From assembly GCA_047495785.1 (NCBI GenBank), contig JBLDXI010000013.1, positions 1,302,001-1,366,000 of the forward strand: a stretch of DNA of 64,000 nucleotides, read 5' to 3'. The DNA is from Lepidodermella squamata (taxonomy: Eukaryota; Animalia; Gastrotricha). The notes under the pieces were generated by a model. That model ran no database searches, had not been told where the DNA came from, and saw only the letters and a program-made list of their open reading frames with translations. The translations under genes were made by a program, and so were the position numbers. Each line of letters begins with the position of its first letter. The stretch's first letter is position 1. Positions 7,911-14,842 of the stretch are shown here, piece after piece.

Positions 7911-8975
7911 ACCATCGGCCAAGGACCGCTCGGAGCGTGACGGCTTCGTCCGAGGTGGAGGCGGCATGGCATCATCGTCTTCCCTGTTATGTTGCATACG
8001 TCAATCTTAAAAAAATGTGCTGGTAAGTTATGAACCGACGCTTTTGATCCAAATGTTCCCGCAGCAGGCACTGAATGGTTCACAGTCCACCTCAGATGCA
8101 TCCCCTGGGACGGCGATTATCCTCTCCTCCTTTTGACTCCTTTGAGCGCTGTTGGCGATCAGTTATCAGTTGCTAAACATATTTTCCATTTTTTGAAATA
8201 CGAAATATCGAACGATTCGGCGAATTGGTCTTATTCAATTTTTAGGATGAACAAACCGAAAATAAATTCGGCATTCTGTTGCTCTCAACCTTTGCTCCTA
8301 ACGACACAATAACATTTTTCTGTTAGCCGTTCGTGTTCTAAGGTGTCACTAGACATAAGGGCAATCCCTCCAGGCATGCGATTTCTTCCAGTCGATCGTA
8401 GCTTCCCTATTTTACATTCGATGCTCTCATCGCCGCCCGATCAAGAAGTAATGTACGAGCTGCTCATGTAGCATCTTATATTTCTTGAGGTACCTATCTG
8501 TCTTGTCTCGCACGCTTGTCTGCTGCTATTCAATGAGCCGTCAATGATTTGTAACGAATCACTGATGATTTCAATGTAAACCTCAAGCGTTACAGTAACG
8601 ATGATCTTGCCATGTAGAGCTCTATCAGCCCTGAGATCCATAGTAGTAAATGGTAATTCAAGATTTCAAGAGCTCGTGACCCAGCTTTACTTCGTCGAAT
8701 ATAATCCCTCGATCCGACGCTATTTTCGTAATAAAAGTAATTATTAAGTAACGCAAACGCTTAACGAAAGTCGAAATAAATAACTCCGAGAAACTTTATT
8801 ACAAATAGCCCTGCAACTTATAGCTTCTAGCCTCAGGTTTAACGCAACATTTCAGTGGATTTAATTTGTAGCCGACAGCAATATCTGTCTGAAAATGTTC
8901 ACAATGCACGCGTTGAAATTTACCGTGGCCTTACGGTAGCGAGTACTCGGATTTTTCTTCAGCTGCGCAGTTGAA

Positions 8976-10268
8976 ATGTTACGACTAATTGTATTGCTTA
9001 ACATTATTTTTGATGTCTTGGGACAAGAAGCGAGTACACAATCTCCACAACAATTTTCAACTCTCAGTGAAACTAGTTCCGACGGCGGGTCCCGTATCAA
9101 GGCATGTGCGCGTTGCATGTATTGGGAGGGGCAGTTGCCTTTAAACCTTCAAGACCAATTAAAATCCACGCCAAAAGATCCCCGCTGCTTGCGCTGGGTG
9201 GACAATATTCCGGTCAGTGAGTATGAAAATTGCGGTACAGCGATGGATGGAGAATCGAATGCCTGCGTTTATGTGAATCTCACGATTGTAATGGTAAGAA
9301 AGCAATCAAATTTCAATTAAGACTCTTGGTTAAAAGCAAAATTTTTTTAGCAAAATGCAGCAACAGATGCCTTGAATCAAGCTGGCCAACAGATCGGCTC
9401 TATCAGTGGCACGGCTGGCAACGTCTTGGGAACGGCCGCAAACCCTGTGGGTGCTTTGACGAATGCATCAGGTATAAGCAGTTCTTCTATTCCGCTCGCC
9501 AACAATGCTGGCAGCGTGTCAGGAGTTGACAGTAACACTAACGCAGCGAGCAGTGTTCCAGCTTCGTCAGTGATATCAGCGTCTCGCTTTGGACGAGCTG
9601 GACGTCGTTGGCAGAGGCGCCAAGTCATGATAGGAGGCGATAATTCTCCTGGCTACCTATCAAGACCCTACCGAACGAAACAGTCGCAGCTAGGATCCAA
9701 CTTCGGACAATCCAATAGCATAGCATCTGGCTCGCAAACGTTTGGCCAAAATCAGCCCAATCTATCACAGCCTTTGTCACCAGTCAGTAATGCGGTGGGA
9801 ATGGGCCAGGGACTTAGTTCAACAGGGCCGACTGTTTTAAAAATTTGGTACAAGGGCTGTGTAAAACTGTCGCTCCTAGAGACACTTGCTGGTTCGCACT
9901 GCAAACTGACTCCGGAATTCGCAGATATTCGATTCTTTTCCCAACAGGCTTGTGTAATAAATTGATGTATATTTAATTACAGAACTGGATTTTTACAGGC
10001 CCTTTTGCAGCCACTAATGGATGCGATCACTTCACTAAATACTTTATTCGGCAGCTCTTCCAACTCTACTACGACTGTCGATGGGCTATGCTACTTTTTG
10101 AACAAAGAATTCGCTCGAGAGCTATGGAAAACAATGATGAAATTTTCAGCTGGCAGCTCATCTTCAAGCAGTAGCAGCGGCATCGCTAGTGGGCTTGGAA
10201 GCGCTTTGGGCGGCAGCAGCTTATTGGGCGGTACTTCATCAAGCCTCGTTCAAGGTCTCGGGAAATGA
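8976..10268 (+). CDS. Secreted Cys-rich protein, paralog A of a three-gene cluster (3 exons)
   Basis: Signal-peptide-like start. Exons 8976-9293, 9351-9947 (or 9953) and 9999-10268. Shares CxxC, DGESNACxY, YKGCVxLSxLETLxGSxC and DIRFFSQQ blocks with B and C. Confidence 0.88.
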
Positions 10269-10377
10269 GACTAAAAATGTTGACGTCTTCTATTTATTCA
10301 CCCTTGGTTTTTTAGGCTTCGCTGCCTTGAAATTATTTCATGAGATATCATTTTGATGAAGTAAAAGTGAAAAAAAT

Positions 10378-11543
10378 TTAACCGCCTAAAACACTGGTGA
10401 CTGGTTTCATCATGTCCGGGTCATAATGAAGCATAGCCTTCCAAACTTGTCGGGTAAATTCCTTTTTGACAATATAACAAAGGCCGTCTACGCCAATTTT
10501 TGTACCAGCGAACCCGTATAAGCCTTGGTTCAAAGTATCAACGAGGTCCATCATCGGCTGAAGCAGCGCTTGCTGGGAGAAGAATCGAATGTCGTTGATA
10601 TCAGGGTCCAGACGGCAATTCGACCCGGTCAGAGTTTCCAAGAGGGAAAGTCTAACGCAGCCTTTGTAGAATATTTTGTAGGTGTAAGTTCCGTTGTTTT
10701 TCGTGACAAAATCTGGCAATTTGACCCCGTTCAAAATGCTTGCAATCGAACTATTTGCTGTTCCTAGGGCGCCACCTAACGCACCATTAACCGATCCAAG
10801 ACCTCCTCCAAGCGCGCCGTTAGCAGAACCGATAACCCCACCCAAACCTGAAGAGCCGCTTCCCAAGATGTTGCCAAGATTAACCTGTCGCTTTTTGCGC
10901 CCGAAACCCGGAACCCTAGGAGCTGTCACGGGTAGCTTCGGTATTGTTACCGGAATGGTTATTGGAAGTTTCGGGGTGGTCAAAAATTGAGGAATAGTCA
11001 CACCGGCTGCAGTAAGGGCGCCCCCAATCGGATTACTAGGATTGATTGTCACGCCGATGGCAGAGCCAAGACTGCCAAGTGGATCGCTGGTGTTGATTTT
11101 AATTGGAATATTGCCAAGAGGATCCGCTAGAATAGTGCCAGCTTGACCCAAAGCAGAGGTAGCATTGGCCCCGATCATGTTCAACAAGTCGGTAAGAATA
11201 TTCTTAATACTGATCGTCATATTGAAATAGAGGCACGCGTTTGATTCGCCATCAAATGGTGTGCCACAATCTTCATACCTGAAATGAAAAGTTTTAATTC
11301 CACCTTAAAAATTAAGGTTTTCATTACGTACTGAGATTCAGGAATGCCATCGTTCCACTTTTTACACCGCGAGTCGTTTTTGTTTCCAGGAATCGGTATG
11401 AAATTTTGTAAATTCAGCGGTAAGCCCCCTTCCATGTAGAAGCATTTTGGGCATCGTTGAACCCGAATAGCAGTGTTTTGGTCACTCTGTTGTTGTGAGC
11501 TGATAGCAGCCAAGGAAACTAAGAAGAGCGCAACCCAAAGCAT
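10378..11543 (-). CDS. Secreted Cys-rich protein, paralog B (2 exons)
   Basis: MLWVALFLVSLAAISSQ signal-like start. Intron 11279-11331 joins ESQ|YEDCGTPFDGESNACLY. Internal FGRKKRQ site. Confidence 0.9.
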
Positions 11544-11883
11544 GGCAGCAATGTCTATAGCGAAAAGTTCAAAATCACCGATGAAACCAGCTAAATTTAT
11601 CCACCGCGGATCTTGGGCCATGACCTTTCAACCGTTATATAGTTTACCGCTGCCTACGCAATCTCGCTCGTGTTTACCGGGCTAAACTTTTTTTGATCGT
11701 GTCAGCGCGGAGATTTTATATATTCCAACTCAGGAGAAATGTATTTTTTTATTACTATTCGTGTTGTAACACAAAATACTGCAAACTTAGTCAGGCACAT
11801 TTTTATAGCTGGTAAAGCTGTAGTTATTGTGTTATATTTTGCGTGATTCAAAGCCATTCCCTCGCTTTTCGGCTGTTTCCGGT

Positions 11884-13004
11884 TCACCCCGTAGGTATGA
11901 TTTGATTGATAAGGCTTGGGTCGTAGTGAAGAAGTGCCTTCCAAATTTGCTTCGTAAAATCTTTCGTCTGAAAGTAGCACAATCCATCGATCTTATTGCT
12001 GATACCTGCGTAGTTTGTGAGACCCGTATTTAGCACATTTATGAAATCCATCAATGGCTGAAGCAGAGCCTGCGAATAAATAAATAAAATTACATAAATA
12101 AAATAATTATTGCTGAATTAAATATAAGGTAAACCTGTTGGGAGAAGAAACGAATATCGTTAAGGTCAGGATCCAAGCGACAATTAGAACCGGTTAGGGT
12201 TTCTAGGACTGATAGCCTAACGCAACCTTTGTAGAACATTTTGAATGTGTAACCATTCCCGGACGGTGTCAGTGGATTTGGAAAATTAGGAATACTCGGC
12301 AGGCCTGGAATTGCGGTTGGCAAGCCGGGTATGCTAGGCAAACCTGGTATCAGACTACGCGAGCCGCCGGATAAATTTACGGACGCTATCGGCCTTTGGA
12401 TTCGATAGGTTTGCCGCTTTTTGCGCCCGAAGCCACCGAATCCACCACCGCCTCCTATATTAGGAATATTAGGAATAGTCACGGGAATCGGAACTGGAGT
12501 ACTGAATGGCAAAGTAGGCAAAGTTGCTGGAATTGTAATCGGCAATGTAACAGGCAATGACGATAGTACCGACAATAACGTGGCTGGGTTGTTGATTATG
12601 CCACCAATGGTGTCAGTCAAATTTTGCGTCATATTAATCGCGTTGTTGATGTTATCCAAAATGTCGGTCACTAGGTTCTTAATGACAAAAGTCATGTTCA
12701 AATAAACGCAAGCATTTGATTCGCCATCAAAAGGTTCCCCGCAATTTTCAAACTCGGACTCGGGTATTCCGTCGTTCCATAAAATGCACCGTTCGTCATT
12801 CGAACCAGGTGTTTTGGGTATGGTGAGGCCGAACGGCAGTTGCGTTGAATTCATGAAAAAGCATTTCGCGCATCGCGTTATTCTCGATATATTATTCCTG
12901 ACTTCGGTGACATACGGAAGGCGAGTCTCTGCTGTTTGCCCTGCTACGAAGTCACCTGGAACCAATAAGAGAGATATCAGGACGAGCTTAAATGAAAATA
13001 GCAT
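11884..13004 (-). CDS. Secreted Cys-rich protein, paralog C (2 exons)
   Basis: MLFSFKLVLISLLLVPG signal-like start. Intron 12070-12134. The last exon ALLQPLMDF...DGLCYF...IWKALLHYDP...PTG* aligns with paralog B. Internal FGRKKRQ site. Confidence 0.9.
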
Positions 13005-13737
13005 TTTGCGACTGCATTCACGATTTTGTCAAAGAGATTATTTATATATTGCTCGCCCTCGCTCATTTTCATCTCGTCGTTGTCATAGGGGCTCCTTTCA
13101 ATTCATCGTCAAAGAATGATAGTGCTGCCAGCTTTTTTCACCATTAAAATTGCGTGACATGATAGCGCGTGGTGAATTGGGTAATTTTATGATCGATCTC
13201 GCGCCGGGTCAGGTCATCGTTTAATGAGTCATGGCGCGAATAATTGCAGGTAATAATTGAGGACCCTATTTCCGGCGCTACATCAAAGGCGCCTTGGTGC
13301 GCGCAAAAAGCCGACGAAGCGTGCGCGTAACACTTGCCTAGCAGGTAAATGAGCTAATAATTAACTCGATTGACTGTGACACACACCGACGCGCGACTGG
13401 GTCGCAAGATGGTTATCACACTGTGGCAAGAGGCTTGTTTCCCTGGTATGAGAAATAAGGCGGGAATTTAGAAATAACATTTTTTTATTCACCATCAATT
13501 GAATTCATACACAACCATCGGCGATTTTCATAACGATTTTGATTTATACAATTTTTGATTATAACGGAGTGAACAGAGGATGAATAATCGTCGATTAATA
13601 AGGTAACGATTGAAACAGCAACGCTGAACAAAGCGTGTCGGTAAAAAGCAGTCAGTCGAATCAACAAATCAGAGCACTGAGATTGCACGCGATGATAAAA
13701 GAAGAATGCTATACTTCAAGAGCGTAAAGGCACGCGC

Positions 13738-14755
13738 CTAACGCCAGCTGTTGGCGGGCTTGTCGCGACGGCCACCGACCGCTGGTTTGTTCGAGCCGCC
13801 GTTGTAGCGAGGCGCGCGACTGCTGGTCGACTTGTTGTTCGAGGTAGAGCTGGTTGAGCCCGAAACGACGCCTGATGAACTGCCGGTCGAATTGCCAGCC
13901 CGGCTGGAGAAACAGTAGTTGGCGGTGTGACCCTTGACGCCGCATTTGTGGCAGAATTTCGCAGACAGAACAGGGCACGTAATTTCACCTAGAATAAAGA
14001 AAAATAGACGTTAATTTCTGAAAATTAAATAAAAAATTGTCATCGCACCTTTTTCGTTACGAATGACGTGACTGGTGAACAGAGCAGGAGAACGGCCGGT
14101 GTTGCGGCAGAAAACGCAGACGCGCTGAAGCGGAGGCGGGGCGGACTTGTGGAAACGTTCGCGCCAACGACGCTTGTTTTCGAACAGACGCTCAAGAGCT
14201 AAAGAAAAAGAAAAATTTAAAATCCAAATCACATTTCAATTTTTACATTCGAAAGCACTATGATGAAAAGAAAGACAGATAATAAAGCTTACGAGGACAA
14301 CCAGGGGCTGTTTGGATGTTCCAGGCCCTCCAGTAGCCTTCCTCCTGCTCATCGAAGCAGTCGTCACTAGCAGAAGCGTGCGCGTCGTTCGACTCGGGTA
14401 GAAAAACGTCGTCGTTGTGCTCTTCATCGGACGGAACGAAGCCGCTCGACGGCGTGTCCTGGGCGATTTTGCCGAATGTGACGTGGTGACGATGGTCGCC
14501 GTGCCCGTTGACCATTGACAGCGACGAGAAGCAGCCGAAACGAATCGGTGAAGAGTTGCTCGGAAGGGGCGACGTATCGCCGCAGCTGTCGAAGGCGAAC
14601 GAAAGAGCGCTGTTCATAGCCGATCGACTGCCGTAGCCGTAGTCGTTTGGCGAGCCAGCGACGTTCTTGCTGATTTGAGGCGCCTGCTCGGTAACTTCAG
14701 CCATGCTGTAGAACAGCGGGTTCCACGGGTTCCAGGCAGCGGTCGAAGTAGACAT
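13738..14755 (-). CDS. nanos: Nanos-family RNA-binding zinc-finger protein (3 exons, 287 aa)
   Basis: Exons 14755-14293, 14198-14049 and 13988-13738 give CVFCRNTGRSPALFTSHVIRNEKGEITCPVLSAKFCHKCGVKGHTANYC, the Nanos double-CCHC signature (CVFC-x12-H-x10-CPVL). Confidence 0.9.
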
Positions 14756-14842
14756 GATAATGATAGATCGAGAGAATTAGTTCAAGTCACGAAATTATTG
14801 CGAATTGATGAGCTTTGATACCTGTGACAGGGGCGCTGGTCG

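Follow-up and report, generated by a model that had tools for sequence, protein, structure and literature searches.

A lineage-restricted cluster of three orphan genes in Lepidodermella squamata predicted to encode secreted proteins with a split cysteine core and one convertase-type site

What kind of proteins are encoded by three adjacent paralogous genes whose products join two conserved cysteine blocks through a long low-complexity insert and match no recognised family? The question is raised by positions 8976-13004 of a 64,000-nucleotide (nt) stretch of DNA from the gastrotrich Lepidodermella squamata (GenBank assembly GCA_047495785.1, contig JBLDXI010000013.1, positions 1,302,001 to 1,366,000 of the forward strand). 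This stretch, referred to below as the window, is eukaryotic DNA with a G+C content of ~44%. The genes, here called A, B and C, constitute a lineage-restricted and previously unnamed orphan family. What is new about the family is its unusual architecture, in which a cysteine core is split by an insert carrying a single predicted cleavage site. On balance, we lean towards the view that the three products are secreted N-glycoproteins that are cut by a convertase to a two-chain form and that serve as extracellular structural or secretory material.

Gene A lies on the forward strand and genes B and C lie on the reverse strand. ORF (open reading frame) listing, direct reading and scripted splicing yield proteins of 394, 370 and 351 residues, respectively, with introns of 51-65 nt (Table 1). 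The three genes match one another in tblastn searches with E values of 4e-48 to 2e-66, and the same program detected no further family copy in the window beyond A, B and C. Contigs from public sequencing runs were aligned to positions 8900-13100. Run X1 is treated as RNA on the basis of a guessed label and run X2 resembles a DNA assembly, while no kind is recorded for runs X3 and X4; contigs of X3 are spliced, and one carries a poly(A) tract. Intron 1 of gene A (57 nt, GT..AG) is spliced out in an RNA-derived contig, and the introns of gene B (11279-11331, 53 nt) and gene C (12070-12134, 65 nt) are each spliced out in contigs of two runs. The three adjacent paralogs proposed by an earlier sequence-only reading of this DNA are thus real, spliced and transcribed. 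That reading had also placed a five-cysteine block in each product, and the block is present in B, although it cannot be read from a single ORF because the 53-nt intron interrupts it. Pseudogenes and chance ORFs were considered and are ruled out by the spliced transcripts together with the exclusively synonymous coding substitutions described below.

Gene B has a poly(A) junction at ~10278, and the gene C cDNA has its 5' end at 13015, joined straight to the template-switch adaptor. The longest gene B RNA contig begins at 11607, and because an in-frame upstream ATG at 11621 lies outside this transcript, the start codon is assigned to the ATG at 11543, at the head of the hydrophobic leader. Contig word depth in X1 and X3 is 174 and 98 for B and 240 and 12.7 for C, against ~3-6 for A, depth being a poor measure of expression. 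On this rough guide, the C/B ratio differs ~10-fold between the two samples, and B and C are therefore not co-regulated in lock-step. Each of the two appears to be transcribed independently and to have a TATA-like box. As side observations, the gene C cDNA shows no spliced leader between 13015 and the library adaptor, and the ATGs of A, B and C each have an unpaired AG 7-14 nt upstream.

Relatives of these genes are few. A HMMER profile of all exon products, searched against 1.84 billion representative proteins, identified four true relatives (P0001-P0004), all from metagenome contigs of one other species and found in at least two assemblies; two further matches (P0005 and P0006) proved to be low-complexity artefacts. 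The search returned none of the window's own proteins, so relatives may be under-sampled, and the spread over two species should be taken as a minimum. With gene C exon 1 as the query, a word-indexed search of 5.8 billion proteins gave no match, and two scans of Joint Genome Institute (JGI) metagenome contigs, one with patterns for each cysteine block, gave pattern matches among which no relative was confirmed. Against Pfam, hmmscan returned nothing relevant for the exon products at E<=1 or for full-length P0001-P0003 at E<=10. The family that could not be recognised from its sequence is accordingly lineage-restricted, as the sequence-only reading had suspected.

The second species retains the arrangement of the locus. 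One of its contigs, L001, has the complete cluster, ordered and oriented as in the window, with nanos, C' and B' followed by A' on the opposite strand. The nanos-C-B-A order is conserved in both L001 and L003, and synteny stops beyond A. Genes B' and C' are intronless, while A' retains the position of A intron 1 but not that of intron 2. A tree built from the conserved core alone separates A and A' from the B and C genes with 100% support, whereas support within the B/C group is 66-77%. Because the tree is weak inside this group, the orthology of B and C rests on position.

The family comparison set comprises six proteins from two species, namely A, B and C and their orthologs A', B' and C', which range from 285 to 394 residues. 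Eight cysteines and 59 alignment columns are invariant across the six. Five of the cysteines belong to an N-terminal block (N-block) and three to a C-terminal block (C-block), with spacings of 3, 24-26, 15 and 11 in the former and 14 and 46 in the latter; all are fixed except for the Cys2-Cys3 interval and the insert between the blocks. The N-terminus of A, B and C is hydrophobic, and in all six proteins a glutamine follows a small residue behind the hydrophobic leader. An N-(M/L)-T sequon stands directly after Cys5 in every member. The signal-like N-terminus, the two cysteine blocks and the retained N-x-T sequon, all described in the sequence-only reading, are therefore present in the three window proteins. 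The C-termini are polar or Ser/Gly-rich and end in Gly or Gly-Lys(-Lys) in four of the six. Because the blocks carry five and three cysteines, at least one disulfide would have to join them if all cysteines are paired.

The insert is less conserved than the blocks that flank it. It spans 139-168 residues in A, B and C and 84-168 residues over all six proteins, and its composition shifts from Ser/Gly/Ala in A to Gly/Leu/Ile in B and Pro/Ile/Gly in C. Identity within the N- and C-blocks is 49-70% between orthologs and 45-72% between paralogs, and the corresponding values for the insert are 39-40% and 23-36%. Its description as poorly alignable holds for length and composition, which vary between paralogs, but misses a conserved basic site and several invariant anchors inside it. 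The anchors comprise (K/Q)N..T just after the sequon, as well as Pro-x-Phe/Leu and Gly just before the C-block.

The basic site lies in the middle of the insert, where F-(G/F), a basic run ending in arginine and then glutamine are kept in all six proteins. The basic runs are RKKR in B, C and B', KRRRKR in C', KRGKR in A' and RAGRRWQRR in A. Five of the six sites (RKKR three times, RRKR and RGKR) fit R-X-(K/R)-R, and all of them lie inside the low-complexity insert. Glycine directly precedes the basic run in five of the six proteins, and glutamine directly follows it in all. Each protein has one such site, and no second conserved basic site was found in the six. A convertase-type motif is thus conserved within the insert of proteins that have a signal-like N-terminus, and cleavage at this motif is predicted. 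Taken with the five-plus-three distribution of cysteines, the R↓Q site (arrow, predicted cut) leads us to predict a two-chain, disulfide-linked mature protein.

Variation between alleles and strains shows how strongly the insert is held. All 32 coding substitutions (32/32) are synonymous, including 13 in the insert and six in the Ser/Gly tail of A. Gene C differs between run X1 and the window at 24 positions, all of them synonymous (24/24) and 12 of them in the insert. A second allele of gene A, seen in a DNA run, has eight coding differences, again all synonymous (8/8), of which one is in the insert and six are in the Ser/Gly tail; the 51-nt intron of this gene has another four differences. 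The only protein-level changes among the A and C variants are two in-frame indels in the gene C insert of X1: a Gly run is shortened by 3 nt, and 12 nt are added in the area of the Pro-Val-Thr-Ile-Pro repeat. In the second species, comparison of two assemblies reveals five synonymous and two non-synonymous changes in the insert. Because the substitutions are synonymous, the insert is constrained at the protein level, and the low-complexity parts of these proteins are under purifying selection. Short-term change in the insert proceeds through slippage indels and not through substitution. The variant data reject a diversifying insert, and with it the proposal in the sequence-only reading of a hypervariable insert on a scaffold that displays variable loops. 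An origin of the insert from DNA-level tandem repeats was likewise rejected, as just two 9-nt mini-repeats were found in gene C.

Two observations concern the gene C variants themselves. Gene B, 600 nt from the variant gene C segment (12134-12945), is identical over 989 nt (10370-11411) in X1, and run X3 contains a mosaic of both gene C variants. A second haplotype, gene conversion or a diverged duplicate located elsewhere could account for the pattern.

The maturation pathway that we propose starts from what the data demonstrate, namely the genes, their splicing and transcription, their conservation, the site motif, the cysteine parity and purifying selection, and adds to it a putative course of secretion, cleavage, disulfide formation and end modification, together with a putative biological role. 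The proteins would enter the secretory pathway via a cleavable signal peptide, leaving a predicted mature N-terminus of glutamine in all six. The eight invariant cysteines of both blocks would form four disulfides, at least one of them between the blocks, and the N-(M/L)-T sequon would be N-glycosylated. A furin- or proprotein-convertase-type enzyme would make a single cut at the mid-insert F-G-(R/K cluster)-R↓Q site, giving a mature molecule of two chains with a disulfide-held core and two long, flexible arms rich in Gly, Ser, Pro and Ile. The N-chain, ending in glycine, could be amidated, and the C-chain, starting with glutamine, could be converted to pyroglutamate. The arms would remain constrained at the protein level, with long-term change coming mainly from in-frame slippage indels. 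As to function, our first choice is an abundant structural or secretory material outside the cell, with cleavage as the licence for its assembly, and a soluble ligand is our second. The structural or secretory role is favoured because of the high RNA-contig depth of B and C, their TATA-like boxes and their repetitive Gly/Pro/Ile composition.

Known furin-activated matrix precursors, such as the ZP-domain cuticlins and nematode cuticle collagens, offer a partial parallel, since they share with A/B/C a conserved RX(K/R)R motif and low-complexity Gly/Pro-rich regions. These precursors are abundant secreted proteins whose assembly is licensed by cleavage, whereas assembly is only proposed for the present family, in which Pfam detects neither a ZP nor a collagen domain, nor any other recognised domain of matrix proteins. 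Several points weigh against the pathway set out above. The predictions of cleavage, disulfides, glycosylation and end modifications all derive from motifs, and the role as structural material is a guess. The contig depth that suggests abundance is a poor measure of expression. The gene A site (RRWQRR, or RAGRR upstream) is dibasic without an arginine at P4 and is not a canonical furin site. Finally, the two AlphaFold2 models described below have a mean predicted local distance difference test (pLDDT) score of 35-37, so the treatment of the N- and C-blocks as one domain is putative.

Other accounts of the same features have to be weighed. The proteins could be prohormone-like precursors that give rise to a circulating two-chain hormone or cytokine with pyroglutamate- and amide-blocked ends, following an insulin-like logic. 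Such an account would explain the conserved Gly-(basic)n-Gln site, the glutamine at both predicted chain starts, the Gly or Gly-Lys with which four of six proteins end and the strong purifying selection over the whole length. Like proinsulin and its relatives, the family has a signal peptide, two conserved cysteine segments, a poorly conserved connector with a basic convertase site and a predicted two-chain product held by inter-chain disulfides. The cysteines are, however, divided five and three instead of two and four, there is one cleavage site instead of two, the connector would not be excised and the chains are many times larger; the insulin/relaxin pattern (B-chain C-x11-C, A-chain CC-x3-C-x8-C) is not matched by the family spacings. 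Amidated neuropeptide precursors share the Gly before the basic run and the Gln after it, but the family has a single site, no short repeated peptide copies and large cysteine blocks as its most conserved parts. Short bioactive peptides with a basic site at either end, a hallmark of neuropeptide and prohormone precursors that often comes in several copies, do not occur in its members. A single site frees no small peptide, leaving chains of ~160-180 residues with long low-complexity arms, and the C-terminal Gly is missing in two of the six. High contig depth, repetitive Gly/Pro/Ile composition and an ortholog length difference of >80 residues also suit a structural protein better, and we regard the hormone account as improbable. 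Still less credible to us is an uncleaved secreted protein of two separate modules, in which the basic run would be a charged, heparin-binding or matrix-binding patch in a flexible linker. The prediction of cleavage from a motif, the non-canonical site of gene A and the 84-168 residues between the blocks all leave room for it. Against it stand the exact R↓Q context and preceding Phe-Gly, which are kept among paralogs whose inserts share 23-40% identity, and the odd cysteine counts, which speak against two self-contained modules.

The likeness to Ly6/three-finger proteins drawn in the sequence-only reading raises a question of fold and not of processing, with which it is compatible. A/B/C could represent a divergent Ly6/uPAR three-finger domain in which the insert forms a giant extension of the finger-2 tip, Cys5 and Cys6 (of KGC) mark the bases of that finger, helices replace the C-terminal CCxxxxCN loop and the product acts as a soluble modulator or ligand in the manner of other Ly6 proteins. 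Language-model searches with gene C exon 1, P0002 and the P0001 C-block all placed Ly6-clan families (UPAR_LY6, Toxin_TOLIP, QVR, Activin_recp, ecTbetaR2 and Ly-6_related) as the top named neighbours, with scores of 0.40-0.71 that are far under the 0.9 from which matches of this tool are meaningful and so count as leads only. The eight cysteines can, presumably, be matched without change of order to those of the first four disulfides in CD59-type domains, which would put the insert at the finger-2 tip. AlphaFold2 models built from 14- and 15-row family alignments have mean pLDDT scores of 34.7 (P0001) and 36.5 (P0002), and neither is reliable; at this low confidence, both flank the insert with long strands, as the three-finger account would have it, and show helices after Cys7, so that the 46-residue Cys7-Cys8 stretch and the C-terminus would be unlike finger 3. 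Both families have a small secreted Cys-rich module opening with CxxC, cysteines at the bases of a (here predicted) central beta hairpin and a 'KGC' after the descending strand. A/B/C nevertheless lack the CCxxxxCN motif, the fifth disulfide and the glycosylphosphatidylinositol (GPI) signal: adjacent cysteines, a C-N motif and a hydrophobic C-terminal tail are absent from all six proteins, which bears out the earlier remark that the CCxxxxCN and GPI tail are missing. Their loops of 24-26 and 15 residues compare with 6 and 5 in CD59, and a compact domain of ~70-100 residues compares with whole proteins of 285-394 residues that have an 84-168-residue insert with a convertase site and a C-terminal third predicted to be helical. 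Ly6-clan Pfam models (UPAR_LY6, UPAR_LY6_2, Toxin_TOLIP, QVR and Activin_recp) gave no hmmscan match to P0001-P0003 even at E<=10, a Foldseek search of the PDB with the P0002 model found nothing with E<1, and PDB sequence profile searches with the N- and C-blocks gave chance matches only (E>0.3). In hhalign, comparison of the N- and C-block profiles with a single Ly6-like ORF from L001 was negative, with a probability of 0.1%. Ly6-clan membership is not established by these weak language-model leads, and we judge it unlikely. A bolder possibility, to which we assign a low probability, is that the family has a new, non-Ly6 disulfide-locked fold, cut once to two chains with all ends blocked by pyroglutamate and amide, that works as a signalling ligand or as a material whose self-assembly is triggered by cleavage and that is peculiar to a small lineage of invertebrates. 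If true, A/B/C would form a class of their own among processed extracellular proteins and would not be a variant of a known one.

The Ly6-like ORF used in the hhalign comparison lies beside A' on L001 (6510-6875, +). It encodes a Ly6/uPAR-like protein with CCKGNLCN and a hydrophobic tail, and it matches UPAR_LY6 and other Ly6-clan Pfam models weakly under hmmscan, which makes it a control for the searches above. The word-indexed search gave no relatives of this ORF, and no counterpart was found near the window cluster.

If the convertase-processed, two-chain reading is right, the cluster defines a compact lineage-specific secreted family with a testable course of maturation, consisting of signal cleavage, four disulfides in a split core and one convertase cut. 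The insert also illustrates that a low-complexity region may look hypervariable between paralogs and yet be strongly constrained in the short term, which counsels caution before such regions are flagged as diversifying. Given their high RNA-contig depth and upstream TATA-like boxes, B and C may be markers of one particular type of secretory cell, and the regions upstream of them might act as tissue-specific drivers in this animal. On present evidence, A/B/C are just one of the many orphan families of poorly sampled invertebrate genomes and open no long-standing question.

Table 1. Coordinates of the A, B and C gene features in the window (arrow, predicted cleavage position)
Feature	Position	Strand	Remark
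Gene A exon 1: signal-like peptide, 5-Cys N-block (Cys 44, 47, 71, 86, 97) and NLT sequon	8976-9293	+	RNA contig shows junction 9293/9351
Gene A exon 2: low-complexity insert, basic site FGRAGRRWQRR↓Q (9588-9623), first half of C-block (YKGC...DIRFFSQQ)	9351-9947	+	
Gene A exon 3: second half of C-block (ALLQPLMD...VDGLCY...W), Ser/Gly-rich tail ending GLGK, stop codon	9999-10268	+	
Gene B exon 1: signal-like peptide and N-block Cys 1-3	11332-11543	-	
Gene B exon 2: remaining N-block, insert with FGRKKR↓Q (10885-10905), entire C-block, stop codon	10378-11278	-	
Gene C exon 1: signal-like peptide, N-block, insert with FGRKKR↓Q (12411-12431), C-block through DIRFFSQQ	12135-13004	-	
Gene C exon 2: second half of C-block and stop codon	11884-12069	-	
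TATA-like box, ~30 nt upstream of the mapped gene C 5' end	13042-13048	-	Putative, from position only
TATA-like box, ~30 nt upstream of where the longest gene B RNA contig starts	11635-11641	-	Putative, from position only

The intron positions differ among the genes. One intron occupies the identical codon boundary, after FFSQQ, in A (9948-9998) and C (12070-12134); B and all three second-species genes lack it, and B has a private intron within its N-block. Intron gain or loss inside this young family is likely. In gene A, intron 2 (9948-9998, 51 nt) needs a GC donor (CAG|GCTTGT) at 9948 for the conserved join of FFSQQ to ALLQP. An alternative GT donor at 9954, 6 nt downstream, would add Ala-Cys; the sparse RNA coverage confirms neither donor.

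A search of the window against Rfam found no match, and neither did a search with a GLYR1-like ORF. A and B are convergent, and the poly(A) junction of B lies ~10 nt from the stop codon of A (10268), so that their 3' ends overlap or abut. On the other side, a nanos gene (13700-14760, -) directly adjoins gene C, and this adjacency is kept in the second species (L001 526-1350). The identity of nanos is based on a Pfam zf-nanos match to the L001 ortholog (E 1.4e-13) and on a zinc-finger region that is 88% identical by tblastx.

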